From Penicillus capitatus (taxonomy: Eukaryota; Plantae; Chlorophyta), in contig OZ287699.1 in NCBI GenBank assembly GCA_965649825.1, positions 310,001-374,000 of the forward strand: DNA of 64,000 nucleotides. The letters run 5' to 3'. A program made the translations under genes and the position numbers. Positions 17,488 through 62,774 of the stretch are shown one piece after another. Position 1 is the first letter of the stretch; each line of letters opens with the position of its first letter. The notes under the pieces were generated by a model. That model was not told the DNA's origin, searched no databases, and saw nothing but the letters and a program-made list of their open reading frames with translations.

Positions 17488-18900
17488 TCAATAGTATCCG
17501 TAGACGACATGGTCCACTATTTCCATACAGACAGGGCAGCGCAGATCCTCCTGTCCCGCTAGCAGTCGTGCGCACGCATCACAGACACATCGATGTGATC
17601 TAGACCAATAACGCTGAGCGCGATCTTCTCAGCGTCACTCATGTAACCGTACGTGTTTCCGTGGACAAAACCCGACGTCTGGGAGTTTGCAAGACAGACG
17701 ACGCATTCCAGTCCTTTGTCGAGCGCGTCCAATGAACGCAGGGGTTGCGGTGTTGGATGCTTGATCGAGATGGTCACGACGATCGTGAACCACTCTCCTT
17801 GCAGAAAACCGAGGTCTGGATCGTCCAGAGCGATGCAATCGAGCAACGCCTCTTGTCCAAAGACTTCCCCAACTTGCGTAAAAGTGTGATCAAAATCTAA
17901 AGCATCTCACACTTCTGCCCTAACAATTCCCAACGGCAACGCACCTTCGAAACAGCTGCTTTGAGAGGCTGTGCGGTGTAAAGCGACGAGAGAGACATGC
18001 GCTTCGACGGAAGTTGCATTGCAGGACTTCAAGAAAACGGACATGTGACGTCCGCGGGCAACTCTTCCATTTGGATAGATCTCCAATATCCTACGCGTAT
18101 CCCTTCACAAGGCAAGCAGGATCTCGGCGATACCATTTGAGACCAGCGGCGAGGAATTCATCGCTGACGACACACCATGGATCCATCCGACGGAGACTCC
18201 GCAGTTGCCACTACATGGACTGCCTCTGACGTCTGCAAAGGCTCGAGGCTCACGGTATAGACTCCAAAAAGGTCGGTATGGCAGAAAGACGATTGCTCGT
18301 TCTCGGAGGAAGGCATTCTCATAACCAATCGTATCACAAACGCGTTCCCAATGAGGTATCCGTTGTGGGGATGATAGATGGAAGCGATGCTTGCAAACCG
18401 ATGCCAACCGAGTCCCCTTCCCGGAGAGAACTGTATTGAAGAGCCTGAGCGGTATTCATTGGGATAAACCGATGTCGAGCCGAAGGCTTACATGTTTGCT
18501 TGTTTTTCTGTGGGTCGTCCTTGTGGACGAGTGTCAAGCTAAATCGCACTTTGTGTGCTTCTTGGCTGCGCAAGATCAGGTAGATCGCAAGATATCCGTT
18601 TTCCGTCTGCTGGAAACTCAGCTCCCTACAACGAACACACGCAACAGGTTGCAAAACGAGAGACGCGATACGGACCAGTCATTGTCCGCTAATCGAAAGA
18701 CCTCTGTGCTAAAGCTCCTTTGCGCAATTCCAAGGAAATCTTTGTGTATATGGATCTGTGCCGAGAGATTGTAAGATGCATGGCAGTGACGTGTTTACTT
18801 CGTAGCTGCCCGTCCATGAGTTCGTTTCGAGACGGTAGGCGTAGGAGATGCGTTGACACACAGCACTTCCCTCTACGGAGAAGCGACTGTCCAGGATTAT
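17488..18900 (-). CDS. Tandem MATH/TRAF + C-terminal C3HC4-type RING protein (5' end approximate)
   Basis: Exons include GSAVCQRISYAYRLETNSWTGSYEV, NGYLIGNAFVIRL, DLGFLQGEWFTIVVTI and CVVCLANSQTSGFVHGNT/HRCVCDACARLLAGQEDLRCPVCME. Stop at 17490-17488. Paralog of 33864-35318. Confidence 0.75.
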
Positions 18901-19049
18901 GTGTTCCGGTGTCCGTTGTATTGCCTTGATAAATGGTGTCTCCTTGTCTGGTAACAAGAGGACGGCATGTGAGGCTGAGTGGATCTACCCTGTTTATCGC
19001 AGCATCGTACTAAATACACAGGCGTGAGAATCTCGAGAGTATGTGGATA

Positions 19050-19301
19050 CTATGTTCTTACATCAGGCGAAAGGCCGCGAGCGATATCGGTGCCCCAACG
19101 GCAAAGGGATCTGTAGGCACGACGAATCACAGGTTGAAGTTCTTTGCACAGTCGGCAGCAGAGCAGAAGGACAAAGACAATCTCTCCGATAACCAGCAAT
19201 GCCATGGCAGCGGGCTGCACGAATGTCTCTGCGAAAGTCGGTGGCGGCGGCGGAGGCGGCGGTGGAGGGGGTGGCGGCGGCGGCTCTCTGAAGAAGAACA
19301 T
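19050..19301 (-). CDS. Small (~83 aa) poly-Pro + single-TM protein
   Basis: MFFFRE-P15-TFAETFVQPAAMALLVIGEIVFVLLLCCRLCK...; encoded by a GGC/GGA/GGT-rich run on the + strand. A poly-Gly reading on the + strand is the alternative. Confidence 0.4.
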   Translation of the reverse strand: MFFFREPPPPPPPPPPPPPPPTFAETFVQPAAMALLVIGEIVFVLLLCCRLCKELQPVIRRAYRSLCRWGTDIARGLSPDVRT

Positions 19302-19608: not shown

Positions 19609-21186
19609 TTATCTTCGCCACTGCGGCGAGATCTCGAGGGGAGCATCGTCGCAGGACGAATAATCGACTCTAGACGTTTCCCACATCTTGATCCCACATC
19701 GTTCTAATGCCTCCTCCACGCGTTTCATCTCAGAATCGGCGGGCAGCTGGCCGTCCAGGGTCCCAAGCACAGCGCCTGTATAAGAGATTCCGGCAGCGGC
19801 GGCGGCGCCCGAATAGTAAAACAGTGCCCAGGTGAGCTCATCGTCCGCATCCACAATTTTCCAAAACTCATTCGACGTCACACCATTGTCCAGAACGGAA
19901 AAGTAAAAAGCTCCAGGATCTTTGGCTCGACGCACACGGTAGTGCCTTCTTCTCCAAACCGCTCGGCCATCCACAGTAATGACCTTGAACACGGGGTCAT
20001 ACCACATAGACGCACGGGCCTTGCCTTGGTAAAACAGCTGAAACTGACAGGGAAAGTAATCATAGGCCGGATTCTTTCCCAGCGTCACTTTCCAACTCCA
20101 CGCTTCCGTGCCCAGATTTCCAATAAAGATCTCTTCCGCTGTGTCAAAGGTAAGCGGTGCTCCACGAAAGAATCTCATTGGCTGAACGTCCGGTAACTGA
20201 GGGATGGAGGCTGTGTTGCCCAGACAGTTGTGTTTTTGCAGTATGCACAAAGAGAATTTCTCCAGGAGCTCTGATTCATACGAGACAATGCAACGATAGC
20301 TGCACACTTGATCATTGATTCCGCAGGAATTGATGCAGTCTAACCCCTTGCGGCATTGAGGGTCCAACAAACATCGTATCACTTCTTCTCTACAGTTGCG
20401 ACCGATGCATTTGATTGCCTCGAAGTCCGGATTCAGATCTGCCATTTCGGGCAACGGCGTGATAAACTGATCTGTTGCCAACTGCAAGAGATAGACGATG
20501 TCGTCTGATGTCTGCCGAGACCAAATGGTCGCCATAGCTGCATAGACATCTAGTATCTTCCTCGCAGCGGAACCGGGAATCCGCGACTGGATTCGCTGGA
20601 GCAGATTCGGAGCGGCAGGATTCATGCCACCAAGCGAAATCCAATGCGACAATTCGTCTGCCGTGCTTTCGAAACAGAGCACGACTTTCGGTCGACTTTC
20701 CTGGAGAAAACGTCCGTAGACAGCGGCGTCGATGTCACCCTTGACGATTCCGACAAAGAGAACGAGCTCTGGACGAGGCTTTGACTCTGAGATGGGATCT
20801 GAGGGAGACATGACGTTCGGCAAGAATCCAGGGTAACTCCATTTCAATCGTTGGCTGATGTGTTTCATGACATCGGACCACGACGGTCCAAAGGGACTCC
20901 TTTCGTCCGACGCAACGATCAGGACATTCACGACCTCCATCGTCTCCTCCGACATGTCTCGTTCCTAGAAACGCATTTTCGGTACAGAAGCTGAGCAGAA
21001 GCTGCGGACATGGGCACTGTCGGTCAGCGAATCGCCGATCTGCGTTCTCGTGCGGGACGTCACTTTTCTGATGGGAAGCGTCCGAACAGAAGACGATCGG
21101 TTCGACTGGTGCACCGTCGGGAGTGCCGTCACGTGATTCCTTCCCCACACACATCGTCCATTCAGCCGAAGGCGCAGAGACTGCAT
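19609..21186 (-). CDS. VDR: Violaxanthin de-epoxidase-related protein
   Basis: Cys-rich CLLDPQCRKGLDCINSCGINDQVCSYRCIVSYES and lipocalin-like GKNPAYDYFPCQFQLFY in the 448-aa ORF 19609-20955. A transit-peptide exon from ATG 21186 splices in phase 0 (inferred). Confidence 0.88.
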
Positions 21187-21249
21187 GATGTGACATCTCC
21201 TATCTCGCTTTCTCACTTCTCTTAACGTTTGACCTTCGGGCTGTCTGTC

Positions 21250-22461
21250 ATGGAACGCGTTCCTGCGTCTTCCTTTTCGTTACGTTTCGTAGCGCTCATC
21301 GTGTGTTGGTATCTTTTTACCTTGTGCAGCAACATGAGTGGCAAGGCTTTCGTCAAAAGAACGCTTGACGCCGTCTCACCCACGACGGTATCACTGGGTT
21401 GCGCCGCCGCCGTTTACATCGGACAGGAATTCTTGCGACGCAAAACGGACGACCATCGTATCAACTGGGAACTACACAAATGGGCCCTTGTGGTCGGCTT
21501 CATCCAATTTCTTGCTACGGCTCTGACCTACGCCAGCTTCGCCCTGTCATCCATATCATGGACCTACTGCTTTCGAACTCTGGAGCCCCTCATTTCCGCA
21601 GCCCTGCAGTACGTGGCATTTCGTGAGGTGCTGACAACGAAAGAGATTTCGGCGCTCTCTGCCTTGGCGATGGGCATTGTCATCACCGTTAACGCAACGG
21701 GAGGCGGTCAAGTCTACAGTGCATGGGTAGGTGGACTAGCGGCGACGGCAACGGCGATCTACAGCACGCGCAGTGTCGCAGGAAGTCGCGTCATGCGTCA
21801 ATACCAAGTATCTGGTCGCGATCTCTTCCTTCTGGCATCTGTCTATGGCTTCTTCTTCAGTATCTGGTCGCAGATCTCGATCTGCATTCTCAGATGCGTC
21901 AGTTTGAATGGCCTGCCGTGGCGTGTCTTTGGTCAGTTGACATTCACAGGCGTGTTTCACTGCATCTATAATCTGCTCTCCTTCCAAATCTTGGAGATGT
22001 TGCAGCCAGTTTCCCACGGCGTCTGCAATACGATGAAGCGTGTCTTCATGGTTGTCATTTCGGCTGCACTGTCTGGAAACTGGCTGACGCCTGTACAGCT
22101 TTTGGGCATGGTGATCGCCAACATCGCGGCCGCTGTGTATAGTATCGAAGTGCGGAAGAGACGAGAAGCCAGGCGATCCGAGATTCCTGTCATCCGTTCC
22201 GATGCTTCCGACGATGCTCTATACAATAATGCCACAGACAAGCTTGCGAACGATCCTAGACGCGAGAGCAAGAATCAGGGAGAGTCGAGCAAGTTCATGC
22301 TGTGGATGTTGGTGGTGCTGATGACAGGAGTCATGTACCTCGCTTTCGCTTTCTCGGCGCTCGACAGCTGGAGAATGAGCGGAGAGGAGAAACAGCCATC
22401 CTGGAACGCACAAGAGTTTTTTACGAATTTATTCACTGCACAAAGACCGCTGATTTCATAA
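21250..22461 (+). CDS. Triose-phosphate-translocator/EamA family transporter with an extra C-terminal TM
   Basis: Motifs CWYLFTLCSNMSGK, YCFRTLEP and PVSHGVCNTMKRVFMVV; multiple hydrophobic segments; intronless. Confidence 0.8.
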   Translation: MERVPASSFSLRFVALIVCWYLFTLCSNMSGKAFVKRTLDAVSPTTVSLGCAAAVYIGQEFLRRKTDDHRINWELHKWALVVGFIQFLATALTYASFALSSISWTYCFRTLEPLISAALQYVAFREVLTTKEISALSALAMGIVITVNATGGGQVYSAWVGGLAATATAIYSTRSVAGSRVMRQYQVSGRDLFLLASVYGFFFSIWSQISICILRCVSLNGLPWRVFGQLTFTGVFHCIYNLLSFQILEMLQPVSHGVCNTMKRVFMVVISAALSGNWLTPVQLLGMVIANIAAAVYSIEVRKRREARRSEIPVIRSDASDDALYNNATDKLANDPRRESKNQGESSKFMLWMLVVLMTGVMYLAFAFSALDSWRMSGEEKQPSWNAQEFFTNLFTAQRPLIS

Positions 22462-22702: not shown

Positions 22703-23777
22703 TCAAGCGTCTTCGTTGTACTCGATGCTCAACGGGGTGTCCGGTTTCGCTGGCTCTTCGATCTGCACCTCATCAGGCTCAACGATGGACACATTTTTCA
22801 CCAAGACGTAGACGCTGCCACGATCTCCGCGTAAGATTCGGGTGTCCGGGTCGAGGAAGGTGGTGAGAAGCCAGGTCTGGGAGCGTTCGCTTGCGATCGG
22901 GATTTTCAAATCAGGCTGCTGCGAGATGAGATTGCCCAACTGCGCGACGGCATCGCGAACGGAACTCTGCAACGGTTTCAATGCCGAGGCAACATTTGAG
23001 GTATCGATCTTCTGCCCCATGATCGTCATCGTCGACGGAATCTCGATATCCTTCAGCAACTCGGGCGTGCGAATGATGCCTTCCTCAAACTTCACTTGGA
23101 GACGGGACGGACTTCGCACTTCGAGCTTAGCCGTGGTGCTGAACGCCGTGCGCGTGAATGGTACCGTGATCTGCACCTAGTACGCCATACCAACCAGCGT
23201 CGGAAAAGATGGCGAGGAAAGAGAAGTGGGTTGGACCTGGTTCTCGGCTGTGAGGCTCAAGCCGTCAATTTTCTGTGTGATGTCGCCGATCGAGATAAAG
23301 GGCAAACGACTGAGGGCCAAAGTCGCAATGAGTTCGGAATTGGATGTGTAGACGAGTTTCCAGTCGCCGCTTAACATCTCCATGGCCTAAGAACGATGTC
23401 AGTCTAGAAAACGACAGAAGGGGATATACGCTGGTCGGTGAGGGCGTCGGGTTCTGTGCTTCCAACTGGGTGATGCATTCGTTGATCCGTGCCTTTGTCT
23501 CACCGCGTGCCGACAGCCCACGGTTCGTTCCGTACAGCGCATCAAGCAATGAGGACTTGAGCGAGGCGACGGAGTTCGGAAGTGGAGTTAAAGGAGTGGG
23601 TTCGACCGATGCGGCCGCGACGACCGCAGTGGGACCACGTCTGGTCATGATAGTCTCACTTTGCTTCGGAGAGGTGCATCCTGGTAGTCTTTCGCGTCGA
23701 AGGCTCGGCGTCGCTCTGAAAACAACACCAGGCGCGAGAGCCGTCGTGAGGCGCGTCGTTGCCGCGTGTCGATTCAT
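22703..23777 (-). CDS. Plastid lipid-associated protein / fibrillin (3 exons)
   Basis: LKSSLLDALYGTNRGLSA...ITQLEAQNPTPSP, LSGDWKLVYTSNSEL and WLLTTFLDPDTRILRGDRGSVYVL are PAP_fibrillin motifs; N-terminal transit-like region. Confidence 0.9.
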
Positions 23778-25047
23778 GTGCACGCAAGAAGTCGATGAAG
23801 TGATGATAACAAAGGGACGAATGTTTGTACGTTCGCAGAAACAGTGTCAATGGGTCTGTCTAAAGCAAGAAGGGTAGAATAGAAATGGTTGGCAACCTGG
23901 TGTCTACGTTTCCCAAGCTGCTGCCGTTTGATTTGTCAAGTTTGCAGATTCATCATTCGACATCCCAATATCGTAACCTCAGCCATCCAGTGTTGACTCG
24001 AAGCTCGTAATAGGACTCTAGCATTGAGCGGTGCGACAAGTCTTGGACTCGCTCAAGCCATCGATCATGACGTGCTGAATGGAAGATGGCTGTACAAAGA
24101 GTGACATGTTCAAGATATTGTTCGGTAGTTGCAAAATAAAGGCTGACAATATCGTCCAGTCGTGTATCTTGAGTCTTTACAGGAGACGACTGGTTGTCAT
24201 GACGTCCCGAATATGATAGAGAGAACTGCCACAATCGTCACTGACAGTGGTGCAGAAGTAATAAGAGTGACACGTTAAATCAGTGCCCCGCAGTTCGCGT
24301 CCCCTGGGAGGTTCGAGCGCGTTAGTCGACCTATAGTGCCTACGGCGACTGCATGGGCACCGCCACCTCAGCTTTCTCCATTAAGCAAATCTTTCTAATG
24401 TTACATTCGCCTGATCGAGAAACAGCCGTACCTCATTTCTCAACCTCATTTGCCGGTCGATGTTTTCCGTGCACGAAAAGTTCGACGACGAATTCGACGA
24501 GGTGAGGCCAAGACGCATTTCTCTGATCAACTAAGCCAATTTCCGTTTGCAGAACGAAGTTTGGAGCAACGACCAGTCGCTGGACCGCGAAGAAATGGCC
24601 GACGGTTCTCTCCCCGACCCGGAGCGTTCTGAAAAACAAAACGGAAAGAAAAACGTATGCGGATTTGATGATAAAGTAAGCGTATCTAACACATCAGTGA
24701 ATGCTGACACGGGCGCGCATTCTCTAGTGTGTCCGTTTAACGGAGGCCGAAGAAGGCACATTCACCAAAGAAGGTCTGAAGAAGTCGTTCGGAGACAAGG
24801 CTCGGATGCCTCGCCAAATCGAAACCCTTGAAAGGAGAAACGTGGCTGGCGGCGAGGCGCGCAATGGCGCCCCCCGACGAGGAAAGGTTAGTAAGAACCG
24901 TGCGCTGTTTAGAGAATCCGAGTCGTGCGTCTTATCAGGGAGGCCGACGCGAGGACGGAAATTCGAGTCCGAGATTCAACGTTTATCAAGCCTCGAAGGT
25001 GATAAGCCCTTTTCCGATGACTTGTATCGCAACAACGTGTTCGACAG

Positions 25048-27432
25048 ATGTGGGCCCCTGTGAGCGTCGTCAACACGTTTCCCTCGCACACTTCTCGTCC
25101 TCGATGCCGCGAAAAGGGCTCTTCGGTTGCCTTCTCCAGAGAATTCGACCGCGGACAAGCTCCGCGCATCAAAGCACGCATGACAAGGGGCACTGCTGCC
25201 AAAAACACGCCCCCGGCCAGCTCGACTTGGCCGCCTCTCCCTCAGACTGAACGTCACAGCTCCCGAGGTTCGACACTCGCTCGCGCAGAGGTGCGGTGTT
25301 CTTTGTCCCGCTCCGGCTTGCAGCTCTCCTCACAGGGAAACCCAAAGGAGATCTGCGAGGTCGAGCTAGAGGGATACGGTCTCGCGCAGATCCTTCAGGT
25401 CCGAGGGAGGTTTGCAGGGAGGATTGTCGAGCGAGCGGGACCGTTCTCGAGGAGGATTACCGTTCCACTCGTCTCCAAGGGTTTCTCCGATCCGGAAGAA
25501 GCGACGCGAGGATTGGCTCGCCTGCCGCCGAGTGCCGTCCGCCGTCGCGTTCACGTCCTTTCCGACAGAGAGAATGGCGTGGGGACGTTCATCTACGTGG
25601 GAGATCTAGGACTTCTCGGAGGTGGAGACAGAGAGCCCCCGGCCGGAGGCGGCGCGCTCGGACGCCAAGCTGCCGCCAGCTCCCGGCCAGAGAAGAAGCA
25701 CTCTCTGGTCTCGCCCGACATCTTTCGCCACTATGCCGGGAGGAAGGAAGAATTCAGCCAACTCTTCGAGGCGTTCACGTCGAGCGGCGAGTCGGTCGTC
25801 GCCAAGGCAATCGCAGGCCCCGCCGGCATAGGAAAGACTCAGCTCGCAATAAAGGTGTTCGAGTGGCTCAAGATGAACGACAGCTACGACCACACCTTCT
25901 GGATCCCTTCGGACTCGAAGGAGAACCTTTATGCCGCCTTCTTGAACATCGCCGAATACCTGGAGATCTCCGCAGACGACGAGATCCCGGTGCTCGTCCG
26001 CCGCGTTCACCAGGAGCTCGGAGGGTCGCGATGCCTCTACGTCTTCGACGACGCCTTTGATCTCGAACTGATCCGCGAGTACCTTCCACCGGAGGTCGGG
26101 CATGCGATTGTCACGACGCGAAACGCTGTAGCAGGGAGCTGGGAGGGCGACACGGTGCAGCTCGGGCCGTTCGACGAGTGCGATGCGTGGTTCCTCGCGC
26201 ACAGCTTCGGATACACCCGGTCGCCGCACTCGGAGGGTCTGGACGATTTGATCGAGTTGCTGCCTCCCTACCCGCTCACTCTGGCGCAGTTCTTCTCGAT
26301 GATGAAGTACGAGGGCGTGCCGAGCCCCGCCGAATGGCTGCATCAGGTGGAACGGTACGCCCCTTCGAGATACGAAGCCGGGGTCATAGAGATGCTCTCC
26401 GAAGAGCACGACGTCAGAGGAGCCAGCGCGATGGTCTACCTGTTTCGCTCGAACGTGCTGAGCATTCTGAGGGAACCCGACGACCTTGGAACGCACTGTC
26501 TCGACACACTCATCAGGCTGTCGCTGCTCGACCCAAATGGAGTGCCCATCAAGTGGGTGTGCGAATGGCACGGACAAGGAGATCGGCAATCCGAAGCAGA
26601 AGCGCAGACATCCGTAAAGGTTCTCGAGCACTACTCGTATGTCTCGTGGAACGAGAAGAACAATCAAATCTACATTCACGCAGAGACACAGCTCCTTGCG
26701 AGACACCTGCTCTTACACAGCAACGAAGCAATTCCCGAATGGAGAGAGAAGCTCGCGAAAAAGGCCGAAGACAGAGCCAGAGATCACATCAAGACCATCG
26801 TCCGTTCGATAAGTAAATACACCAGCGACTGGAGAACGGATCGTTCGAACCGAGAATCGTGGACGTCGCTCGCGCGGAACGGGGTCTCGCTCCTCAAACA
26901 CTGCGAAGAGAGCGACGACATTGGCGTGGAGTTGAAGCTAGTCGAACACATGGCAAGGGCCTACTCCGAGATGTGCATGTTTCGCGAGTCGCTCTCCCAC
27001 CTTCAAAGAGCCCTCGACGTGTGCGAGCGCCTCAACGGCGATGCGGACCATCCGGACCTCGTCCAATGCATCCAGAGCTACGCCATCGGACTCTCGCGAG
27101 TCGGAAGAGACAGCGAAGCACTGCCGTTCCGCAAAAGAGCCCTCGACATGTGCGAGCGCCTCAACGGCGACGCGGACCATCCCGACCTCGTCCAATGCAT
27201 CCGGAACTACGCCGTCGGACTCGAGCGAGTCGGAAGAGACAGCGAAGCACTGCCGTTCCGCAAGAGAGCCCTCGACATGTGCGAGCGCCTCAACGGCGAC
27301 GCGGACCATCCGGACCTCGTCCAATGCATCCAGAGCTACGCCATCGGACTCTCGCGAGTCGGAAGAGACAGCGAAGCACTGCCGTTCCGCAAGAGAGCAG
27401 AAGAAATGCATAAGCGGCTTGGAAATCAATAA
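25048..27432 (+). CDS. NB-ARC (STAND NTPase)-TPR NLR-like protein, 3-repeat copy
   Basis: Walker A GPAGIGKT, Walker B CLYVFDDA, IVTTRN, PYPLTL (GLPL-like) and IYIHAETQ (MHD-like), followed by 3 HPDLV-type 43-aa repeats. True start and a possible 45-nt intron (25291-25335) are uncertain. Confidence 0.9.
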   Translation: MWAPVSVVNTFPSHTSRPRCREKGSSVAFSREFDRGQAPRIKARMTRGTAAKNTPPASSTWPPLPQTERHSSRGSTLARAEVRCSLSRSGLQLSSQGNPKEICEVELEGYGLAQILQVRGRFAGRIVERAGPFSRRITVPLVSKGFSDPEEATRGLARLPPSAVRRRVHVLSDRENGVGTFIYVGDLGLLGGGDREPPAGGGALGRQAAASSRPEKKHSLVSPDIFRHYAGRKEEFSQLFEAFTSSGESVVAKAIAGPAGIGKTQLAIKVFEWLKMNDSYDHTFWIPSDSKENLYAAFLNIAEYLEISADDEIPVLVRRVHQELGGSRCLYVFDDAFDLELIREYLPPEVGHAIVTTRNAVAGSWEGDTVQLGPFDECDAWFLAHSFGYTRSPHSEGLDDLIELLPPYPLTLAQFFSMMKYEGVPSPAEWLHQVERYAPSRYEAGVIEMLSEEHDVRGASAMVYLFRSNVLSILREPDDLGTHCLDTLIRLSLLDPNGVPIKWVCEWHGQGDRQSEAEAQTSVKVLEHYSYVSWNEKNNQIYIHAETQLLARHLLLHSNEAIPEWREKLAKKAEDRARDHIKTIVRSISKYTSDWRTDRSNRESWTSLARNGVSLLKHCEESDDIGVELKLVEHMARAYSEMCMFRESLSHLQRALDVCERLNGDADHPDLVQCIQSYAIGLSRVGRDSEALPFRKRALDMCERLNGDADHPDLVQCIRNYAVGLERVGRDSEALPFRKRALDMCERLNGDADHPDLVQCIQSYAIGLSRVGRDSEALPFRKRAEEMHKRLGNQ
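27049..27400 (+). repeat. 129-bp coding tandem repeat x3 (last copy truncated)
   Basis: Unit HPDLVQCIxxYAxGLxRVGRDSEALPFRKRALDMCERLNGDAD. Confidence 0.95.
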
Positions 27433-41648: not shown

Positions 41649-41667
41649 ACGAGCGTCAAACGGAAGG

Positions 41668-51751: not shown

Positions 51752-53100
51752 TCAATAGAGTGGCTCGTACTCCCCGAAATCGCAATGCGCTTCTGGATGA
51801 GACATTTGCGGATAGGCTTTTGCTTGCTCAGGTTTCCTGTTGTTCTTCATGGTTTGGTCACCGATCAGGATGTAAATGGTAAAGGTGAGCCATCCGTCTA
51901 CGTTGAATCCAAACGCAGGATCATGGAGTTCTTTTATCTTGACGAAATTCGTCCAGCACCAGTTGCTGGATCCCGCAGCAAACGTATGCTTCAGCTCTTT
52001 AACATCATGTACTCTGTTTGAAAAATGCAGAGCGAGAAGCAACATGCCTTGTGATTTGTTGTTTCTGCCTTCATGATGGTTGACCAAAGTGAATCGCAAC
52101 TTGGCGTGGATCGCGCGTTCGGACTTGGAAATCACATAGGCGCTGTATTTGTCTTCTTCACTCGAAAGTTTCTTCTGCTCAGGGAATAGTTTTAAAGACC
52201 TACACAGATTGCAGCACCGTTCTCCGACTGTCTATTTCTTGCGTTGAAGTGAGCGTACAATTCAGCATCTGGTATCAAAGCTGTGTTGGAAATCAGTGTG
52301 ACATTGGCCATCTCATCCAGATGACGCAGTTGCCACTACAGAAAACCTCTCGGCTGGATCACTGACAACGTACAGCGTGACCGTCATGACAAGCGGTTTC
52401 CCTTGTTGAGTGGCGATAAGAGTTTCATTCTCTTCGCGAATGATTCCGATCGTCACCACAATAGAGAAGCAACCTTCGTGAATAAAGCCGACGTCTGGAA
52501 TGACGACATTGGATGTCGGCACAAGGTTACTGCGACCCCATACCGATCCTGCATCGAACAATTTGCGCTTACCTAGCAAGCCATACGCTTAAGGACAGTA
52601 CAAAACCATAATAAGAACGACTGAAGACTTTGCTATTCGACGGATTCGAATGGTTCATGAGCTCAAGGGTGAAGCAAACGTCGACGCTTTCTTTATTGCT
52701 CGACTTCAAATGCATGCCAACATGACCGTCGGCGCTGTCAACTTTGAGCTGTCTAGTCGACAAGCATTCCGAGGTTGAAGGAGAGCTGTGGAGAAAGCGA
52801 GTTCACCATTGACTTCCGGCGATGGTGAATGGCTCCGTCAGGACGTTGTCAACACCAGAATCTATGAAGTATCTGTGGACGCGGCACTTTGGCCGAGAAT
52901 GTCGTAAGGATGCTCTCCGACTCTTCTGTAGCTCACTTTGTATTGACCAGAGAGGCGGTTGGTTTGCAGATCGAAAGAGTAGTTCACGCCATTGTTCGAG
53001 CCGCTTCCGCCTAGAAATCCCAAACACTGTAGAGCGCTTCGTTCACCAGTCAGATCACATTTGTCAATTTCGTCTCGTCCATTCAAGCCGACAAATCGAA
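51752..53100 (-). CDS. Tandem MATH/TRAF protein lacking RING (5' end approximate)
   Basis: GSNNGVNYSF...|CRVHRYFIDSGVDNVLTEPFTIAGSQW, WGRSNLV...GFIHEGCFSIVVTI and NWCWTNFVKIKELHDPAFGFNVDGWLTFTIYI. Shares the pre-CRVHRY intron position with 33864-35318. Confidence 0.8.
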
Positions 53101-53505
53101 GGACTGCGATTTCAGAGAAAGCGCCTAAACAGAGGAGAACGCAGATGCTGACGTTGACCTGATGAAAAATGATGGGACGTGATCGAGGACGTGAGAATGG
53201 AAGACGCAAACTGAGAGCTTTCGACAAATCGACGAGGAGGGTTGAACACATCAATTCTGGGTTTGGGAGACCGTCTGTCGTCAGACTAACAGAGAGGAGT
53301 TCCAGTACGATCACAGTGGTCACTTCATTAGGCGCGGGCAATTCATAAACGCGTGTGTGAGCTCCCTTTGTAGGTTAAACACAGCAGTCTATCTCATTGA
53401 TGTCTTGGAGCACATCGTCTCATCTGTCGTACGAAGCGTCACGTGAGGCGACGTCAGCGAGGTTGAGTCAGAACGACTTTGGTATTTACCTGTTTTGAAC
53501 CCTTC

Positions 53506-54590: not shown

Positions 54591-56128
54591 GAAGATGAAG
54601 TCCGGCCTGGACCCGATGTTTCTTCCCAGAGAAAGAAATAGCACGAGGAACTGGACGCATGCATAAAAAAGTGAAAGGGACAGAATCTGGTGTGGTGTCA
54701 ATCAAAGAGTTCAATCTCTTTATCAATGGACTGACGTCGTAAGGAGGAACTTCTGTCGTCTGTGGATCCAATGCCATGCGAATCTGTCCTCGAGGACACA
54801 TCATTCGCATCGGATTGATCGCACCGATCACACCATTCTTCGAATTGATGGAGAGGGAGAGCATTTCCGAAACGCCCGTAACCGCTCGTTAGAACTGGAT
54901 CTCCTCACAAAGGCCCGTTTCCTTGTGCTTTGAGAGAATAGATATCTCTTGGCAACCCATACATCCATCAGACGATCTCAAGGAGTGAAGCTGGATATGC
55001 TGGTTCGATTCATGAAGGCATTTGAACATCTGTTCCGTTGTGCAATCGCCAAGACACGCTGGTATCGTCACTCCTCTGGCAGCTTCCTGCAAAGTCTTGA
55101 CAAAACTAAGGATTTGATGACACCTGAGTTTGCTCATGGTCAGGTGCTGCGATTCAACACTGTTGAGTGATGGATGTATCGACAATGAGAGTGAGCCATT
55201 TACCGCAGGGAATCTATACTCGGACAGCCAAAGAGTGGAACACCGACGATGAGGTATGCTTGCTGAATCTCGTCTCTATTCCGCTTACGGCCATACTTTG
55301 GTCCAATCGGTTAACGGCGAGATCAAAGTGTTTTAAGTCATGACGTTCGTTTTGGGACGTAAATGGTAAACGAGAGTGTGTCAGCAAAATATGGCGTGAT
55401 GGAACATCTGCCTGCCGTATTTCAAGGCCGTCGTTCGTCGTTTCGTATCTTCACCGGCGTCGTACTCGGCCCATTTCATCAAGCAGATTTCCACTTCTGC
55501 GATCCATCTGATCTCCACTTGCCTGACGTAATTTGTTTATCCATGCATCGAGTTCGCAAAACTACCCGCGACGCATTTAACGCGGTAAAAAACCTGTTCT
55601 GAAAAACGCTCGTGTGAGTTGCCGTTCGCAGAACCAAGTTTGGAGCAACGACCAGTCGCTGGACCGCGAAGAAATGGCCGACGGTTCTCTCTCCGACCCG
55701 GAGCGTTCTGAAAGACAAAACGGAAAGAAAAGCGTACGTGGATTTGATGATAAAGTAAGCGTATCGAACACATCCGTGAATGCTGACACGGGCGCGCATT
55801 CTCTAGTGTGTCCCTTTAACGGAGGCCGAAGAAGGCACATTCACCAAAGAAGGTCTGAAGAAGTCGTTCGGAGACAAGGCTCGGATGCCTCGCCAAATCG
55901 AAACCCTCGGAAGGAGAAACGTGGCTGGCGGCGAGGCGCGCAATGGCGCGCTCCGACGAGGAAAGGTTAGTAAGAGCCGTGCGTTGTTTAGAAAATCCGA
56001 GTCCTGCGTCTTTCATCAGGGGAGCCGACACAAAGACAGCACATCGAGTCCGAGACTCAACGTTTATCAGGCTTCGAAGGTGATAAGCCCCTTTCCGATG
56101 ACTTGTATCGCAACAACGTGTTCGACAG

Positions 56129-59100
56129 ATGTGGGACCCTGTGAGCGTCGTCAACACGTTTCCCTCGCACACTTCTCTTCCTCGATGCCGCGAAAAGGGC
56201 TCTTCGGTTCTCTTCTCCAGAGAATTCGACGGCGGACAAGCTCCGCGCATCGAAGCACGCACGACAAGGGGCACTGCTGCCAAAAACACGCCCCCGGCCA
56301 GCTCGACTTGGCCGCCTCTCCCTCAGACTGAACGTCACAGCTCCCGAGGTTCGACACTCGCTCGCGCAGAGGTGCGGTGTTCTTTGTCCCGCTCCGGCTT
56401 GCAGCTCTCCTCACAGGGAAACCCAAAGGAGATCTGCGAGGTCGAGCTAGAGGGATACGGTCTCGTGCAGATCCTTCAGGTCCGAGGGAGGTTTGCAGGG
56501 AGGATTGTCGAGCGAGCGGGACCGTTCTCGAGGAGGATTACCGTTCCACTCGTCTTCAAGGGTTTCTCCGATCCGGAAGAAGCGACGCGAGGATTGGCTC
56601 GCCTGCCGCCGAGTGCCGTCTGCCGTCGCGTTCACGTCCTTTCCGACAGAGAGAATGGCGTGGGGACGTTCATCTACGTGGGAGATCTAGGACTTCTCGG
56701 AGGCGGGGACAGAGAGCCCCCGGCCGGAGGCGGCGCGCTCGGACGCCAAACTGCCGCCAGCTCCCGGCCAGAGAAGAAGCACACTCTGATCTCGCCCGAC
56801 ATCTTTCGCCACTATGCCGGGAGGAAGGAAGAATTCAGCCAACTCTTTGAGGCGTTTACGTCGAGCGGCGAGTCGGTCGTCGTCAAGGCAATCGCAGGCC
56901 CCGCCGGCATAGGAAAGACGCAGCTCGCAATAAAGGTGTTCGAGTGGCTCAAGATGAAGGGCAGCTACGACCACACATTCTGGATCCCCTCGGACTCGAA
57001 GGAGAACCTTTCCGCCGCCTTCCTGAACATCGCCGAATACCTGGAGATCTCCACAGACGACGAGATCCCGGTGCTCGTCAGCCGCGTTCACCAGGAGCTC
57101 GGAGAGTCGCGATGCCTATACGTCTTCGACGACGCCTTTGACCTCGAACTGATCCGCGAGTACCTTCCACCGGAGGTCGGGCATGCGATTGTCACGACGC
57201 GAAACGCTGGAGCAGGGAGCTGGGAGGCCGACACGGTGGAGCTCGGGCCGTTCGACGAGTGCGATGCGTGGTTCCTCGCGCACAGCTTCGGATACACCCG
57301 GTCGCCGCACTCGGAGGGTCTGGACGATTTGATCGAGTTGCTGCCTCCCTACCCGCTCACTCTGGCGCAGTTCTTCTCGATGATGAAGTACGAGGGCGTG
57401 GCGAGCCCCGCCGAGTGGCTGCATCAGGTGGAACGGTATGCCCCTTCGAGATACGAAGCCGGGGTCATAGAGATGCTCTCCGAAGAGCACGACGTCAGAG
57501 GAGCCAGCGCGATGGTCTACCTGTTTCGCTCGAACGTGCTGAGCATTCTGAGGGAACCCGACGACCTTGGAACGCACTGTCTCGACACACTCATCAGGCT
57601 GGCGCTGCTCGACCCGAATGGAGTGCCCATCAAGTGGGTGTGCGAATGGCACGGACAAGGAGATCGGCAATCCGAAGCAGAAGCGCAGGCATCCGTAAAG
57701 CTTCTCGAGCACTACTCGTATGTCTCGTGGAACGAGAAGAACAATCAAATCTACATTCACGCCGATACACAGCTCCTAGCGAGACACCTGCTCTTACACA
57801 GCAACGAAGCAATTCCCGAATGGAGAGAGAAGCTCGCGAAAAAGGCCGAAGACAGAGCCAGAGATCACATCAAGACCATCGTCCACTCAATAAGCAAATA
57901 CACCAGCGGCTGGAGAACGGATCGTTCGAACCGAGAATCGTGGACGTCGCTCGCGCGGAACGAGGTCTCGCTCCTCAAACACTGCGAAGAGAGCGACGAC
58001 ATTGGCGTGGAGTTGAAGCTAGTCGAAAACATTGCATGGGCTTACTATAAGTTGTGCATGTTTCGCGAGTGGCTCTCCCACGGTCAAAGAGCGCTCGACG
58101 TGTGCGAGCGCCTCCACGGCGATTCGGACCATCCGGACCTCGTCCGATGCATCCAGAACTACTCCGCCGGACTCTCGCAAGCGGGAAGAGACGGCGAAGC
58201 ACTGCCGTTCCTCAAGAGAGCCCTCGACATGTACGAGCGCCTCAACGGCGACGCGGACCATCCGGACCTCGTCCGATGCATCCGGAGCTACGCCGCCGGA
58301 CTCTCGCGAGCGGGAAGAGACACCGAAGCACTGCCGTTCGACAAGAGAGCCCTCGAGATGTGCGAGCGCCTCAACGGCGACGCGGACCATCCGGACCTCG
58401 TCCGATGCATCCGGAACTACGCCGTCGGACTCGAACGAGTGGGAAGAGACACCGAAGCACTGCCGTTCCGCAAGAGAGCGCTCGACATGTGCGAGCGCCT
58501 CAACGGCGACGCGGACCATCCGGACCTCGTCCAATGCATCCAGAGCTACGCCGTCGGACTCGAGCAAGTCGGAAGAGACACCGAAGCACTGCCGTTCTAC
58601 AAGAGAGCGCTCGACATGTGCGAGCGCCTCAACGGCGACGCTGACCATCCGGACCTCGTCCTATGCATCCGGAACTACGCCGCCGGACTCTCGCCAGCGG
58701 GAAGAGACAGCGAAGCACTGCCGTTCCTCAAGAGAGCGCTCGACATGTGCGAGCGCCTCAACGGCGACGCGGACCATCCGGACCTCGTCCGATGCATCCA
58801 GAGCTACGTCGTCGGACTCTCGCAAGCGGGAAGAGACGGCGAAGCACTGCCGTTCCTCAAGAGAGCGCTCGACATGTGCGAGCGCCTCAACGGCGACGCT
58901 GACCATCCGGACCTCGTCCTATGCATCCGGAACTACGCCGCCGGACTCGAGCAAGTCGGAAGGAACAGCGAAGCACTGCCGCTCTACAAGAGAGCGCTCG
59001 ACATGTGCGAGCGCCTCAAAGGCGACGCGGACCATCCGGACCTCGTCCGATGCATCCGGAACTACGCCGTCGGACTCGAGCAAGTCGGAAGAAACAGCGA

Positions 59101-60061
59101 AGCACTGCCGTTCCTCAAGAGAGCGCTCGACATGTGCGAGCGCCTCAACGGCGACGCGGACCATCCGGACCTCGTCCAATGCAACCAGAGCTACGCCGTC
59201 GGACTCTCGCGAGCGGGAAGAGACAGCGAAGCACTGCCGTTCCGCAAGAGAGCGCTCGACATGTGCGAGCGCCTCAACGGCAACGCGGACCATCCGGACC
59301 TCGTCCGATGCATCCGGAGCTACGCCGTCGGACTCGAGCAAGTCGGAAGGAACAGCGAAGCACTGCCGCTCTACAAGAGAGCGCTCGACATGTGCGAGCG
59401 CCTCAACGGCGACGCGGACCATCCGGACCTCGTCCTATGCATCCGGAACTACGCCGTCGGACTCTCGCAAGCGGGAAGAGACGGCGAAGCACTGCCGTTC
59501 CTCAAGAGAGCGCTCGACATGTGCGAGCGCCTCAACGGCGACGCTGACCATCCGGACCTCGTCCAATGCAACCAGAGCTACGCCTTCGTACACTCGCGAG
59601 TCGGAAGGAACAGCGAAACACTGCCGTTCCTCAAGAGAGCGCTCGACATGTGCGAGCGCCTCAACGGCGACGCTGACCATCCGGACCTCGTCCAATGCAA
59701 CCAGAGCTACGCCGTCGGACTCTCGCGAGTGGGAAGAGACAGCGAAGCACTGCCGTTCGGCAAGAGAGCGCTCGACATGTGCGAGCGCCTCAACGGCAAC
59801 GCGGACCATCCGGACCTCGTCCGATGCATCCGGAGCTACGCCGTCGGACTCTCGCGAATCGGAAGAGACAGCGAAGCACTGCCGTTTTACAAGAGATCGC
59901 TCGACATGTGCGAGCGCCTCAACGGCGACGCGGACCATCCGGACCTCGTCCAATGCAACCAGAGCTACGCCGCCGGACTCTCGCGAGTGGGAAGAGACAG
60001 CGAAGCACTGCCGTTCCGCAAGAGAGCAGAGGAAATGCGTAAGCGGCTTGGCAGTCAATAA
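56129..60061 (+). CDS. NB-ARC-TPR NLR-like protein, 15-repeat copy (1310 aa)
   Basis: Same NTPase motifs as copy 1. The length difference 1310-794=516 aa equals 12 x 43 aa. Confidence 0.92.
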   Translation: MWDPVSVVNTFPSHTSLPRCREKGSSVLFSREFDGGQAPRIEARTTRGTAAKNTPPASSTWPPLPQTERHSSRGSTLARAEVRCSLSRSGLQLSSQGNPKEICEVELEGYGLVQILQVRGRFAGRIVERAGPFSRRITVPLVFKGFSDPEEATRGLARLPPSAVCRRVHVLSDRENGVGTFIYVGDLGLLGGGDREPPAGGGALGRQTAASSRPEKKHTLISPDIFRHYAGRKEEFSQLFEAFTSSGESVVVKAIAGPAGIGKTQLAIKVFEWLKMKGSYDHTFWIPSDSKENLSAAFLNIAEYLEISTDDEIPVLVSRVHQELGESRCLYVFDDAFDLELIREYLPPEVGHAIVTTRNAGAGSWEADTVELGPFDECDAWFLAHSFGYTRSPHSEGLDDLIELLPPYPLTLAQFFSMMKYEGVASPAEWLHQVERYAPSRYEAGVIEMLSEEHDVRGASAMVYLFRSNVLSILREPDDLGTHCLDTLIRLALLDPNGVPIKWVCEWHGQGDRQSEAEAQASVKLLEHYSYVSWNEKNNQIYIHADTQLLARHLLLHSNEAIPEWREKLAKKAEDRARDHIKTIVHSISKYTSGWRTDRSNRESWTSLARNEVSLLKHCEESDDIGVELKLVENIAWAYYKLCMFREWLSHGQRALDVCERLHGDSDHPDLVRCIQNYSAGLSQAGRDGEALPFLKRALDMYERLNGDADHPDLVRCIRSYAAGLSRAGRDTEALPFDKRALEMCERLNGDADHPDLVRCIRNYAVGLERVGRDTEALPFRKRALDMCERLNGDADHPDLVQCIQSYAVGLEQVGRDTEALPFYKRALDMCERLNGDADHPDLVLCIRNYAAGLSPAGRDSEALPFLKRALDMCERLNGDADHPDLVRCIQSYVVGLSQAGRDGEALPFLKRALDMCERLNGDADHPDLVLCIRNYAAGLEQVGRNSEALPLYKRALDMCERLKGDADHPDLVRCIRNYAVGLEQVGRNSEALPFLKRALDMCERLNGDADHPDLVQCNQSYAVGLSRAGRDSEALPFRKRALDMCERLNGNADHPDLVRCIRSYAVGLEQVGRNSEALPLYKRALDMCERLNGDADHPDLVLCIRNYAVGLSQAGRDGEALPFLKRALDMCERLNGDADHPDLVQCNQSYAFVHSRVGRNSETLPFLKRALDMCERLNGDADHPDLVQCNQSYAVGLSRVGRDSEALPFGKRALDMCERLNGNADHPDLVRCIRSYAVGLSRIGRDSEALPFYKRSLDMCERLNGDADHPDLVQCNQSYAAGLSRVGRDSEALPFRKRAEEMRKRLGSQ
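58130..60030 (+). repeat. 129-bp coding tandem repeat x15 (last copy truncated)
   Basis: 15 HPDLV units counted in the translation. Confidence 0.95.
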
Positions 60062-62774
60062 AATCTCCATCTTGATCGGCTAACGTATTTTTATCTTATG
60101 AGTTCCATTTGAAGGTTTCTACACATGTTTGTTTTTGCATATCGTGGCCACGTCGCTAGGACTCTGGAAACGCGAACGACGACGAAGGCTTGTTGCATCA
60201 CAATGATTGTAAACACCTTTGTGGTGCGGACTAAATGGACTCGGAACGAACTAATGCGTTAAGCCGATTGCACGATCACGTCGAATGCATCTCTCCTCGG
60301 TAAGTTGCGCGAAGCCGAGTCTGATGCCAATACGACAAAATCCGATATGCTGGCAATTGCGTTGATTGTTACGCTTCTACTATCGTACAAATTGTAGCAT
60401 GGCTGTCGGTTGTGAGTTGGGTGTGATCGTTTCTCGATGACAAGTTTGCAGTCCTTGCTCTTAATGTCGTCTTCTCATCCGATGCAACTAGCGTTGTGCG
60501 ATTGGGCCAATCTAATCTAGCAGAATAGAGCGAGAGAACGGATTGTTTTTTCTCTTTTTCCGAATCCAGTGGTACATGCTTTCTGTCTAGAACACTCTCC
60601 ACAATCTCCTTGCCGTTGGAGCGTCGATTGTAGAGAAGCGTAAGGTTGTGATATCGATATCGTTGCACTGCTTTTATCGACGGATCCCGATAACGTCGAC
60701 TGAACGAACGGGCGCGACAATAGTAGCTTTTGATTTAATCAAGCAAGTGGTTCTTTTATTAGGCGTCGTCTTATGAGCAGCATCATGTGTCGCAAACGCG
60801 TTTTTTCAATAGTTTGTAACGCGTTCTTAAGTACAGACGCCTCTGATCTCGTGCTTGGGTATTCTCTATTTGTTAACTATTGTAACATTCAAACTCTTAT
60901 CTTGTTCTTTTTTTTTCGTTTCCACGTCGTTCACTGTGTCGTCCGAACTGTTCATTGCGGCTAGTTGTACCAAGTTCTTTGTTGCAGCACTCGATTCGCC
61001 ATGTGGCCTGACAGAAGTCCGCAGAGAGATGGGAAGTGATTTCTGCTGAAGGATTTACACATATTTTTACCGTGCCATCTTGAATTGATAGAAATCGGTT
61101 GTTTTGAGCGGGCCGGGTGTATCTGATGAATATCAGTCAGTTTTACCGATAGCCCTGGCGAAGAGGGTAGCCTCAGAGAGCTGCATCTTCGGGCTCGATT
61201 CGTCGTCACAGTGCAGCGAACCAAGTTTGATCTTCTGCAGCCTTTCTCATTCTTCCCGCAACATAGAACCGTCCTACTCATTTTCTACGAGGAACAGCAT
61301 TAAGGGATAGGTTTCAGCAGGCGAGGTGTACGATAAGAAAATACGGAACACCTGCAAGGCAGGTCTTCTTAAGCAATCTACGACGAGTGATTTCTGCATC
61401 CGGTGGCCTTAGGCTCGCTAATGCGAGGATCGCAGTTGTGGACGTTGTGCGGAAGGCTCCTCTAATGAGTAGTGCTGCAGATCGGATAACCGAGGTCTGA
61501 GATTTTTTTTCTCTGGGCGAGGGCCCTACCGTCAGCTGACTAGATTTGTGCACCGTGGAAGAGAACACAAGGGCGATGGTGCAAGCTTGAAAAAGAGTTC
61601 GTGCAACACCAGGTGTTGCACCCTAAAGACTGTTACCGATGCGTTTGATATACCGTAGTCACCAAAGCTACGTACGACAGTCGTGAAAATCCGCCGCGAG
61701 GGGAGCAATAATTTTATTCTATCCTATTGTGATTCCATAGCGGCAAAGTTCAGTAAACGAGACTGCTCTCTTAAAAAAGCGTCTATGCACAAGAATACAA
61801 GGTATATATATTTGCTGTCCTCTCATTCGTTGTCATTCGCAGGTAGGGTCACATCAGTCGTCTTCTGGCAACTACACTATCCTATCCTATTCAATGTTAT
61901 GGACCTCCAAGAAACGACTGCTGCCCAGATGAAGACGATTCTTCAGGATAGAACCGGCGGTCAACGCAGAATAAAACCCAAATCCTTTCTTGCTGGCTGT
62001 CTGGTCAATAGAACTACATTTAGATAAGAAACGATCCGATCTCGCTTAAAAAGGAGATCAAAACATCGAGTAAACGAAGAACCAAAGAAAAAGCCGCGAA
62101 CGTCTTCTCTGGCAAACAGGCAGGAGCCTTCAAACTTCGATCAAACTTTTATCGAGGTTTCACTAACGCAAGATTACTGATCACATCGATGCTCGATGCC
62201 AACAAACATACTCTTAAGTTAGGGGAAGGCCACTGTCTGGCCGAAGCATCCGATATCTGCAAAAGTGCCACATAAAAGACATGCATCTCAGTGGCAGTTT
62301 GATTTGCAGAAAAGCGAAACAAACATAGTATTGTGGAAGCTCGTGTATCCGCAAAGACAAAATGATTAAAAACACATCGAGAAACGAAAGGGTCGATCTG
62401 CGAAAGAGTGCACCTACTCTCCATGCGGGTGTAGCGCTTCGAAGGCATCATTATCCGTCCCTATAAGAGAGAGACTAACGAGATCATCTTCTATTGTCGC
62501 CTTTGAACGATCGCTCGGCGAGTGCGGCGAGCGACAATCGTTGTGAAGAGTATTTACATCATTGTCTTCTACGCCGCGAAATCGGCCGATCGACATCACG
62601 CAACGATCAGCTGTCGCGTCACGTCACATCGCTAGCTCTAGCGATCTTGTCTGAACAAGTCTGACGGCGGTAGGGCGGGCTAAAGGACGAAAACGAAAAC
62701 ATCGGCACGCTGGCCGGCGTGACAGCATTGCTCTCTGGCACAACGGAATATTCCATTCTGTCCTCACTCCTCTA

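Follow-up and report, generated by a model that had tools for sequence, protein, structure and literature searches.

The 64,000-nucleotide stretch of Penicillus capitatus DNA analysed here (contig OZ287699.1, positions 310,001 to 374,000 of the forward strand; termed the window) encodes two putative NLR-like (nucleotide-binding leucine-rich repeat receptor-like) proteins that combine an NB-ARC domain with tetratricopeptide repeats (TPRs), three proteins with tandem MATH domains, a trypsin-ankyrin fusion protein and a peptide with a knottin-like cysteine pattern. In the initial annotation, these genes were regarded, together with transposable element (TE) insertions and pseudogenes, as a candidate innate-immunity neighbourhood. 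Nearly all of the listed genes are present, but TE insertions and pseudogenes were not found. The interpretation favoured here, with a probability of about 0.55, is that the window is an ordinary gene-dense stretch in which two unrelated families are located among at least nine housekeeping genes, and that the co-location of the NLR genes with the MATH/RING genes and the knottin-pattern gene is incidental, because the NLR genes arrived at their current location only after divergence from a sister species. The first family would consist of a pair of intronless STAND (signal transduction ATPases with numerous domains) NTPases that arose when a block of 4-5 kb was recently duplicated nearby. The second would comprise three old MATH-MATH(-RING) ubiquitin-ligase paralogs that are anchored in the membrane and conserved in synteny. 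The genes and blocks concerned are the following:

25048-27432, plus strand: NLR1, an intronless open reading frame (ORF) of 794 aa, described from Pfam, Tandem Repeats Finder (TRF), alignment and a structure model; N-terminal domain at about aa 95-192, NB-ARC domain at about aa 231-445, a helical linker and TPR_10/12 repeats
56129-60061, plus strand: NLR2, an intronless ORF of 1310 aa with the architecture of NLR1; TPR units at 58084-60027
24540-28665, plus strand: duplicated block 1, holding NLR1 and its flanks (about 0.5 kb on the upstream side and about 1.2 kb on the downstream side)
55619-60802, plus strand: duplicated block 2, the derived copy, holding NLR2
17488-19205, minus strand: MATH-A, 442 aa, seven introns; N-terminal hydrophobic anchor, two MATH domains and a C-terminal RING domain with an aromatic tail
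33826-35318, plus strand: MATH-B, at least 391 aa (no start codon found), six introns; two MATH domains and a C-terminal RING domain
51752-53251, minus strand: MATH-C, 400 aa, four introns; hydrophobic N-terminal segment, two MATH domains, no RING domain

The recent arrival of the NLR genes is indicated by a comparison with the sister species, which is represented by the ENA assembly ERZ26696514 and whose VDE ortholog shares 89% amino acid identity with the VDE-like protein of the window. The sister locus L008 is collinear with window positions 6568-37057 and holds the orthologs of MATH-A and MATH-B. In the interval between the PAP-fibrillin and prenyltransferase genes, however, window positions 23861-30857 (7.0 kb, with the NLR1 block) are exchanged for an unrelated sequence of 2.1 kb. 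The orthologous NLR of the sister species, P0005 (locus L006), is encoded on the same contig about 30 kb away in another gene context, where a Ty3/gypsy element precedes it and unrelated genes follow, and its flanks match window positions 23972-24316 and 28658-29309. As NLR1 is missing from the syntenic site while the flanks of its ortholog match elsewhere, an NLR block of about 5.3 kb must have changed its place, and NLR2 is younger still. In self-BLAST, the NLR duplication is the sole large internal repeat of the window: positions 24540-27398 correspond to 55619-58479 with 95.4% nucleotide identity, and the 2.86 kb so matched comprise about 0.5 kb of upstream sequence with the promoter; positions 28570-28665 also pair with 60707-60802. 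This identity is far above the 75-82% found between the species, so that the duplication is younger than the species split. Block 2 is the derived copy, because the flanks specific to NLR1 match the sister ortholog locus and the NLR2 flanks outside the block do not. No terminal repeats flank the NLR block.

The paralogous NLR loci point in the same direction. Within 10 kb on either side, a MATH homologue was found at none of the seven loci searched (L002-L007 and L010), and the neighbours at these loci are diverse housekeeping genes. The MATH genes also lack excess polymorphism. This was checked against L001, a near-identical contig from the ENA metagenome assembly ERZ25074695 with 99.5% identity to the left and 97.3% identity to the right of NLR1; judged by this alignment, the window is a haplotype or assembly different from L001. 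Substitutions amount to 0-1 per kb at 14.9-26.3 kb and to 5-75 per kb to the right of NLR1, which is the only gene with structural variation between the two sequences. MATH-B, with 7.4 substitutions per kb, varies less than the MFS transporter gene (15.6 per kb) and less than intergenic DNA, and the 0.6 per kb of MATH-A is uninformative, as it falls into the stretch where all genes are near zero. The assignment of MATH/RING and NLR genes to one system is thus not supported, given a sister species that keeps MATH-A and MATH-B in synteny without an NLR gene, an NLR2 gene that arose after speciation, the paralogous loci and the polymorphism data.

Some further observations concern these loci. The divergence between the window and L001 jumps at about 26.3 kb, inside NLR1, which marks either a recombination breakpoint or a switch of the assembler between haplotypes at the repeat. 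Ty3/gypsy ORFs (RVT_1, rve, aspartic protease) adjoin two NLR paralogs of the sister species (L004 18132-20777 and L006 757-6905), and none is present in the window. At L002 5526-7220 (minus strand), a protein with VWA and C-type-lectin domains, an extracellular-type binding protein, is encoded 2.8 kb upstream of the NLR paralog P0002.

The presence of two NLR-like sensors with variable repeats, as initially proposed, is borne out by both genes, which encode NB-ARC-TPR proteins with 3 TPR units in NLR1 and 15 in NLR2. The NB-ARC domain scores 38.4 bits in NLR1 and 38.3 bits in NLR2 (Pfam cut-off 23.5), and TPR_12 scores 71 bits in NLR1 and 329 bits across 13 stretches in NLR2. The repeats are of the kinesin-light-chain type and belong solely to TPR_10/TPR_12; no Pfam match to LRR families was obtained for either protein. 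In an alignment of 12 family members, the P-loop GPAGIGKT, the Walker B motif LYVFDDA and the TTR motif are kept, as are a GLPL-like motif (PYPLTLAQ) and an MHD-like motif (IHA). The nearest solved nucleotide-binding oligomerization domains (NODs) are those of ZAR1 (E 2.6e-6) and NRC4. The family is maintained as intact ORFs in several copies in both species. The NLR ORFs have a G+C content of 0.59-0.63 and a G+C content at third codon positions (GC3) of 0.72, compared to 0.52 and 0.59-0.63, respectively, in neighbouring ORFs. This composition is compatible with a foreign origin or with GC-biased gene conversion.

The repeats of the two NLR genes consist of a 129-nt unit (43 aa) that is present 3.1 times in NLR1 and 15.1 times in NLR2 according to TRF, with 90-94% matches between units. 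The units are more than 85% identical across at least 100 aa, which is the criterion for repeats of the fungal type. When the 18 TPR units were compared with their consensus, 98 nonsynonymous and 20 synonymous codon cells were found (99 nonsynonymous and 30 synonymous sites). Eleven positions (20, 22-24, 27, 30-32, 35, 36 and 42) account for 81 nonsynonymous versus 3 synonymous changes, counts that are not phylogenetic and derive from non-independent units. The L001 allele of NLR1 has about 1.3 kb of additional repeat sequence, corresponding to about 10 more units (about 13 in total) compared to the 3 units in the window, and its frame is broken by deletions of 10, 3 and 7 bp. A 1078-aa database "protein" from this allele (P0001, L001 10001-13237) is a frameshifted read-through of the TPR array in another frame. 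As alternative frames and the antisense strand of the TPR arrays are open, many long overlapping ORFs appear on both strands at 57-60 kb of the window. Near-identical repeats with hypervariable positions, repeat-number polymorphism, a recent duplication, a frameshifted allele and positional turnover are signatures in line with the suggestion that the NLRs are non-self receptors. By their sequences, the NB-ARC-TPR genes look like genes that evolve in the manner of immune receptors.

The N-terminal domain of about 95 aa has no match in Pfam, and within aa 1-230 of the NLRs Pfam finds no TIR, CC or RPW8 domain; a TIR structure is also absent from the Foldseek matches. With the N-terminal domain and the NOD as query, 13 matches were obtained among 5.8 billion proteins, and all close ones originate from two ENA samples. 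A scan of JGI metagenomes yielded distant NB-ARC relatives alone and no further family members. A profile search with the N-terminal domain in 1.84 billion representative sequences retrieved 37 proteins. The close matches are algal paralogs, among which P0011 (on a 337-kb ENA contig) fuses the domain to a beta-lactamase-like domain. The distant matches are N-termini of NB-ARC-TPR, NACHT-HEAT and GTPase proteins, and their named sources are only two Bacteroidota proteins from metagenome-assembled genomes (MAGs) and Candidatus Amoebophilus sp. 36-38. On a bacterial-looking contig (L009 6001-19239), the domain is found on tandem NACHT-HEAT, TPR and GTPase proteins, and it is modular in this respect. 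Structure prediction with AlphaFold reached a pLDDT of 36 with nine close sequences, and a pLDDT of 82.8 with a pTM of 0.73 when a deeper alignment was used. The predicted fold is beta-rich, with four long strands, two short helices and two more strands; no match to this model was found with Foldseek in the PDB or in BFVD. A ubiquitin-like nature of the domain had been considered on account of the start "MQIF..." of some paralogs and the end "LGLRGGG", and it was rejected, as the topology of the model differs and Foldseek returned no ubiquitin-like match.

The relation to bacterial proteins extends beyond the N-terminal domain. NLR1 can be aligned end-to-end with the Bacteroidota MAG protein MEN0016374.1 (26% identity over 755 aa, E 2e-70), and it scores 153.8 bits (E 7e-45) with the NCBIfam model FxSxx_TPR (NF040586), below the curated cut-off of 300. 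PADLOC assigned no defence-system family to the NLRs at E ≤0.01. An exchange of NLR genes with bacteria is a reasonable hypothesis on these alignments, with MAG contigs that are short and a composition that names no donor.

An NB-ARC-TPR family of brown algae was reportedly described by Zambounis et al. in 2012 and is treated in work of 2023 cited in PMC11378527. Like the window NLRs, it is algal, combines an NB-ARC domain with TPR arrays that diversify, and has undergone tandem or proximal duplication. In brown algae, every TPR reportedly has its own exon, and exon shuffling and splicing create the diversity, whereas the window NLRs are single intronless ORFs with gain and loss of units within them. 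Fungal NB-ARC-TPR NLR-like proteins have highly conserved repeats, arrays that differ in length and variability that is concentrated at a few positions (Dyrka et al. 2014, PMC4986451). With this set, the algal NLRs share an NB-ARC domain followed by TPR_10/12-type repeats of roughly 42 aa, a unit identity above 85%, repeat-number polymorphism, few variable positions and variable N-terminal modules. They differ from it in their green-algal host, in the 43-aa unit and in an N-terminal domain that is none of HET, HeLo, Goodbye, sesA/B or PNP_UDP (PMC4986451). The incompatibility phenotype of the fungi has no known counterpart for the algal NLRs.

In the green lineage, the plant TNP proteins likewise have an NB-ARC domain followed by C-terminal TPRs and a TTR in RNBS-B (Johanndrees et al. 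2023, PMC9806590), and their NOD has relatives among NB-TPR proteins of actinobacteria and fungi. In contrast to the algal NLRs, which have the beta-rich N-terminal domain and are lineage-restricted, duplicated and repeat-variable, TNPs have a TIR domain and are conserved and low-copy (PMC9806590). Plant NLRs of the NBS-LRR type share the NB-ARC domain with the algal proteins, but not the LRRs or the TIR, CC or RPW8 N-terminus. Bacterial STAND proteins (FxsT type, Avs-type sensors, Bacteroidota, Candidatus Amoebophilus) are matched by the collinear arrangement of N-terminal domain, NB-ARC and TPRs in MEN0016374.1 and NLR1. The algal genes are set apart from them by the FxSxx_TPR score below the cut-off, by the lack of a PADLOC match and by their position on eukaryotic contigs between intron-containing genes. 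The NB-ARC-TPR architecture serves to sense non-self in fungi and bacteria (PMC4986451, PMC9806590).

By analogy with STAND receptors of plants, fungi and bacteria, a non-self or modified-self ligand would be captured by the TPR array. This would free the NB-ARC switch and lead to nucleotide-dependent oligomerization, which in turn would cluster the N-terminal domains and thereby generate a signal. Diversification of this family proceeds via gain and loss of 43-aa TPR units and via substitutions at about 11 positions per unit. Over evolutionary time the NLR genes are mobile, and the trypsin-ankyrin gene may or may not be connected to them.

The MATH genes were recognized only after splicing of GT-AG introns of 43-77 nt, and Pfam searches with unspliced ORF concatenates had missed them. 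The three TRAF/MATH proteins, two of them RING E3 ligases, that had been annotated initially are thereby partly confirmed: three tandem-MATH genes exist and RING domains are present in MATH-A and MATH-B, but the label TRAF does not apply, as the domain order is reversed and no zf-TRAF domain is present. MATH_2 scores 59 bits in MATH-A, 40.1 bits in MATH-B and 40.6 bits in MATH-C (Pfam cut-off 32), and MATH-B additionally matches MATH with 26.5 bits. zf-C3HC4_3 (cut-off 27) was found in MATH-A (27.8 bits) and MATH-B (29.9 bits) only. The proteins carry a short conserved pre-domain and, in MATH-A and MATH-C, a hydrophobic N-terminal segment. The three paralogs are mutually distant in alignment, MATH-A and MATH-B have syntenic orthologs in the sister species, and a word-seeded homology search with MATH-A among 5.8 billion proteins gave no match.

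The combination of a MATH fold with a RING E3 module is common to MATH-A and MATH-B and to TRAF2/6, TRIM37 and SIAH. With proteins of the MDM2/MUL1/IAP type they share a C3HC4_3 RING at the extreme C-terminus with an aromatic tail, and MDM2, MDM4 and MUL1 are the nearest RING domains in the PDB. Members of the TRAF family have an N-terminal RING, zinc fingers, a coiled coil and a C-terminal MATH domain, whereas MATH-A and MATH-B have the order anchor-MATH-MATH-RING without zinc fingers or coiled coil. With a C-terminal RING and no TRAF zinc fingers, "TRAF" is a misnomer and "MATH-RING ligase" an accurate term. The MATH-RING proteins are probably membrane-anchored dimeric E3 ligases that select their substrates via the MATH domains.

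The remaining candidate genes of the window encode the trypsin-ankyrin protein and the knottin-pattern peptide:

46675-49462, minus strand: trypsin-ankyrin gene, 701 aa, 11 GT-AG introns, a single clean frame
37938-38211, plus strand: knottin-pattern gene, 72-aa precursor with signal peptide, one 55-nt intron at 38040-38094

The trypsin-ankyrin protein consists of a signal-like hydrophobic N-terminus, a full-length trypsin domain (64.9 bits), an acidic and proline-rich linker and six ankyrin repeats; the linker contains a 39-nt repeat (TRF array 47937-48032). Alignment to factor D and matriptase revealed that His57 of the catalytic triad is kept, while Asp102 is replaced by Asn and Ser195 by Lys. 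With two residues replaced, the term "pseudo-protease" of the initial annotation is apt at the level of sequence, and the secretion suggested for the fusion protein derives solely from the hydrophobic N-terminal stretch. The protein is probably a binding protein rather than an enzyme. It shares with inactive S1 protease homologues a full trypsin fold in which Asp102 and Ser195 are replaced, and differs from them in the six fused C-terminal ankyrin repeats, in the signal-like segment in front and in the existence of a paralog with an intact active site (L010). We know of no described equivalent of this fusion.

The knottin-pattern gene was recovered only by joining the exon for the signal peptide to the Cys-rich exon, and a search for Cys density in single ORFs had missed it. 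Its peptide has six Cys in the arrangement C-x6-C-x5-CC-x4-C-x12-C. A signal peptide, a short mature peptide and this spacing are common to inhibitor cystine knot (ICK)/knottin peptides, as the annotation of a knottin-type peptide implied; the cysteine pattern is the sole support for this assignment, under which the disulfides would have the knotted 1-4, 2-5, 3-6 topology. No significant homologue was found in the PDB or Pfam (spider ICK structures in the PDB match with E ~1), and the window peptide differs from the known peptides in having no significant sequence similarity to any knottin family.

Trypsin-fold genes recur near NLR genes at the following loci:

NLR2 locus, window: trypsin-ankyrin gene 6.6 kb away, catalytically dead
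P0009 locus, L010 1-5757, window species: trypsin with intact GDSGGP and many ankyrin exons, ending about 4.2 kb upstream of P0009
P0004 locus, L005 18427-19215, sister species: stand-alone trypsin-like ORF with His57Ser and Ser195Ala, 5.3 kb downstream of P0004

As NLR2 arrived recently, the three adjacencies are not copies of a single block. Their recurrence is suggestive and may reflect a guard-decoy pairing or, equally, a location of both families in plastic genome compartments.

Several observations weigh against a merely incidental co-location and have to be set against the syntenic evidence. MATH-C is oriented head-to-head with NLR2 at a distance of 2.8 kb. Amino acid identity between the window and the sister species is about 70% for MATH-A, about 60% for the NLR and about 42-50% for MATH-B, a figure lowered by an alignment running through introns, whereas housekeeping proteins reach 89-97% (TPT 97%, PAP-fibrillin 93%, ORF777 92%, VDE 89%, MFS 89%); such fast divergence of the MATH proteins would fit a biotic arms race. 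The upstream 10-kb flank at L006 is filled by a retrotransposon of 8.6 kb, so that a MATH neighbour may be hidden there. A trypsin-fold gene is located within 10 kb at three of the nine NLR loci, so that part of the co-location may be more than incidental. As the MATH genes evolve fast, they may have a role in biotic interactions, but no tie to the NLRs emerged. The divergence of NLR, MATH-A and MATH-B beyond that of their housekeeping neighbours and the divergent MATH-C/NLR2 pair would also fit the view of the initial annotation that the entire region of about 45 kb is a linked non-self-recognition neighbourhood of receptors, MATH/RING proteins for turnover or signalling, and secreted effectors. 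Every gene type listed for it is present, and the Arabidopsis MATH/TRAF proteins MUSE13/14, which regulate NLR turnover, provide a precedent. Nevertheless, this view is very improbable: the sister species has MATH-A and MATH-B with no NLR gene between them, the NLR positions are recent, the paralogous NLR loci are devoid of MATH homologues, at least nine housekeeping genes are interspersed, the MATH genes show no excess polymorphism and no turnover markers in the form of TEs or pseudogenes were found in the window.

A smaller unit, in which an NLR acts as guard and a trypsin-like (pseudo)protease as decoy or guardee, with the MATH and knottin genes as bystanders, is unlikely but deserves more credit. 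In such a pair, the dead trypsin-ankyrin protein would serve as bait to which effectors or protease inhibitors of microbes bind, and its state would be under surveillance by the NLR. Decoys are often catalytically dead, as are two of the three neighbouring trypsins, and the adjacencies at the NLR2, P0009 and P0004 loci are independent of a single block. Against this stand the six other NLR loci, which have no trypsin gene within 10 kb, the varying orientation and spacing among the three cases, a possible chance origin of the adjacencies, and the absence of a trypsin neighbour from NLR1, the ancestral copy. Moreover, if the N-terminus is a true signal peptide, the bait would be secreted and thus kept apart from a receptor in the cytosol. 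It is also quite unlikely that the NLRs have no immune function and are bacterial-type STAND regulators acquired by horizontal transfer, either stress or signal switches or genes adrift, with repeats shaped by slippage and gene conversion. The end-to-end similarity to the Bacteroidota protein, the N-terminal domain shared with Candidatus Amoebophilus and bacterial NACHT-HEAT proteins, the FxSxx_TPR match, the intronless genes with their elevated GC3 and the frameshifted allele in L001 would agree with such an origin. Slippage alone, however, does not predict variation at few positions with very few synonymous changes, intact ORFs are kept in several copies in two species, and fungi and bacteria use this architecture to sense non-self. 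The reading of two unrelated families in an ordinary gene-dense stretch thus remains the preferred one.

The setting of these families is a eukaryotic, gene-dense window with a G+C content of about 50%. All 30 introns placed in the spliced genes at 17.5-53.3 kb are of the GT-AG type and 43-127 nt long, mostly 43-58 nt; VDE, TPT, NLR1 and NLR2 have no introns. Such intron lengths are unusually short for a green alga. The best named match of the VDE-like protein is from Ostreobium quekettii (51%), behind a EukProt protein (63%). Together with PAP-fibrillin, TPT and an SS4-like protein in the window and PsbP on a sister-species contig, this match supports the earlier assignment to a green alga, and an affinity of the ulvophycean source to the Bryopsidales is plausible. 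An exact look-up of the NLR2 and VDE ORFs gave no recorded match, and neither Rfam families nor tRNA genes were detected in the window. The interspersed housekeeping genes noted initially are confirmed, as at least nine are located between the candidate genes:

19609-20955, minus strand: VDE-like (Pfam)
21229-22461, plus strand: TPT transporter (Pfam)
22706-23846, minus strand: PAP-fibrillin
30922-31098, minus strand: cis-prenyltransferase exon
about 31114-33419, plus strand: MFS transporter
38.5-40.75 kb (group span 38485-46002), plus strand: ABCG transporter (Pfam)
41274-41531, minus strand: CHD5/GET1-like exon, weak match
about 44.2-44.9 kb, plus strand: TPR protein
45634-46002, plus strand: starch-synthase-4-like exon

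The TE insertions and pseudogenes were not recovered: six-frame Pfam scans of the unassigned stretches at about 17-64 kb revealed no TE protein domain, no pseudogene could be demonstrated in the window, and the sole broken copy seen is the NLR1 allele of L001. The only TE-like hint in the window is a weak match to HTH_28, a transposase-type helix-turn-helix (19.2 bits, cut-off 25), on the minus strand in a low-GC stretch past NLR2 at 60-64 kb. Upstream of the candidate genes, three ORFs of about 210-230 aa each (8778-9461, 13155-13817 and 16232-16882, plus strand) are tandem paralogs that keep an N-terminal motif with CC and have no convincing Pfam family. They diverge fast, with 32-68% amino acid identity between the species, and their duplications are marked by short flanking DNA repeats (12820-12992/15897-16063 and 14124-14329/17178-17381). 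A further ORF at 4722-7049 (plus strand, 775 aa) has no convincing Pfam family and a weak match to RBP_receptor (19 bits). It is 92% conserved over the 161 aa overlapping the sister-species locus and encodes a conserved protein without assigned function.

To our knowledge, innate immunity of chlorophytes is almost undescribed. The new element is a form of NB-ARC-TPR NLR-like receptor from a green alga, with an N-terminal fold that also occurs in STAND proteins of Bacteroidota and with a possible link to trypsin-fold genes. A wider picture, in which siphonous-type green algae possess a small mobile NLR-like family whose architecture is shared with intracellular Bacteroidota, implying exchange, and which combines diversification resembling fungal allorecognition with a recurrent guard-decoy pairing with trypsin-fold proteins, is rather doubtful. 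The TNP family is the only TPR-containing NLR-like class reported from the green lineage (PMC9806590). If the wider picture held, photosynthetic eukaryotes would have a third independent lineage of NB-ARC-TPR immune proteins, next to the TNPs and the family of brown algae. The finding that a link to the MATH/RING neighbours is not supported keeps an "immune supergene" out of the annotation that would be based on co-location alone. The family opens questions on NLR exchange with intracellular bacteria and on the role of the N-terminal domain, and, being lineage-restricted and repeat-hypervariable in an alga of the coenocytic type, it may offer an entry to self/non-self discrimination by giant single-celled algae.

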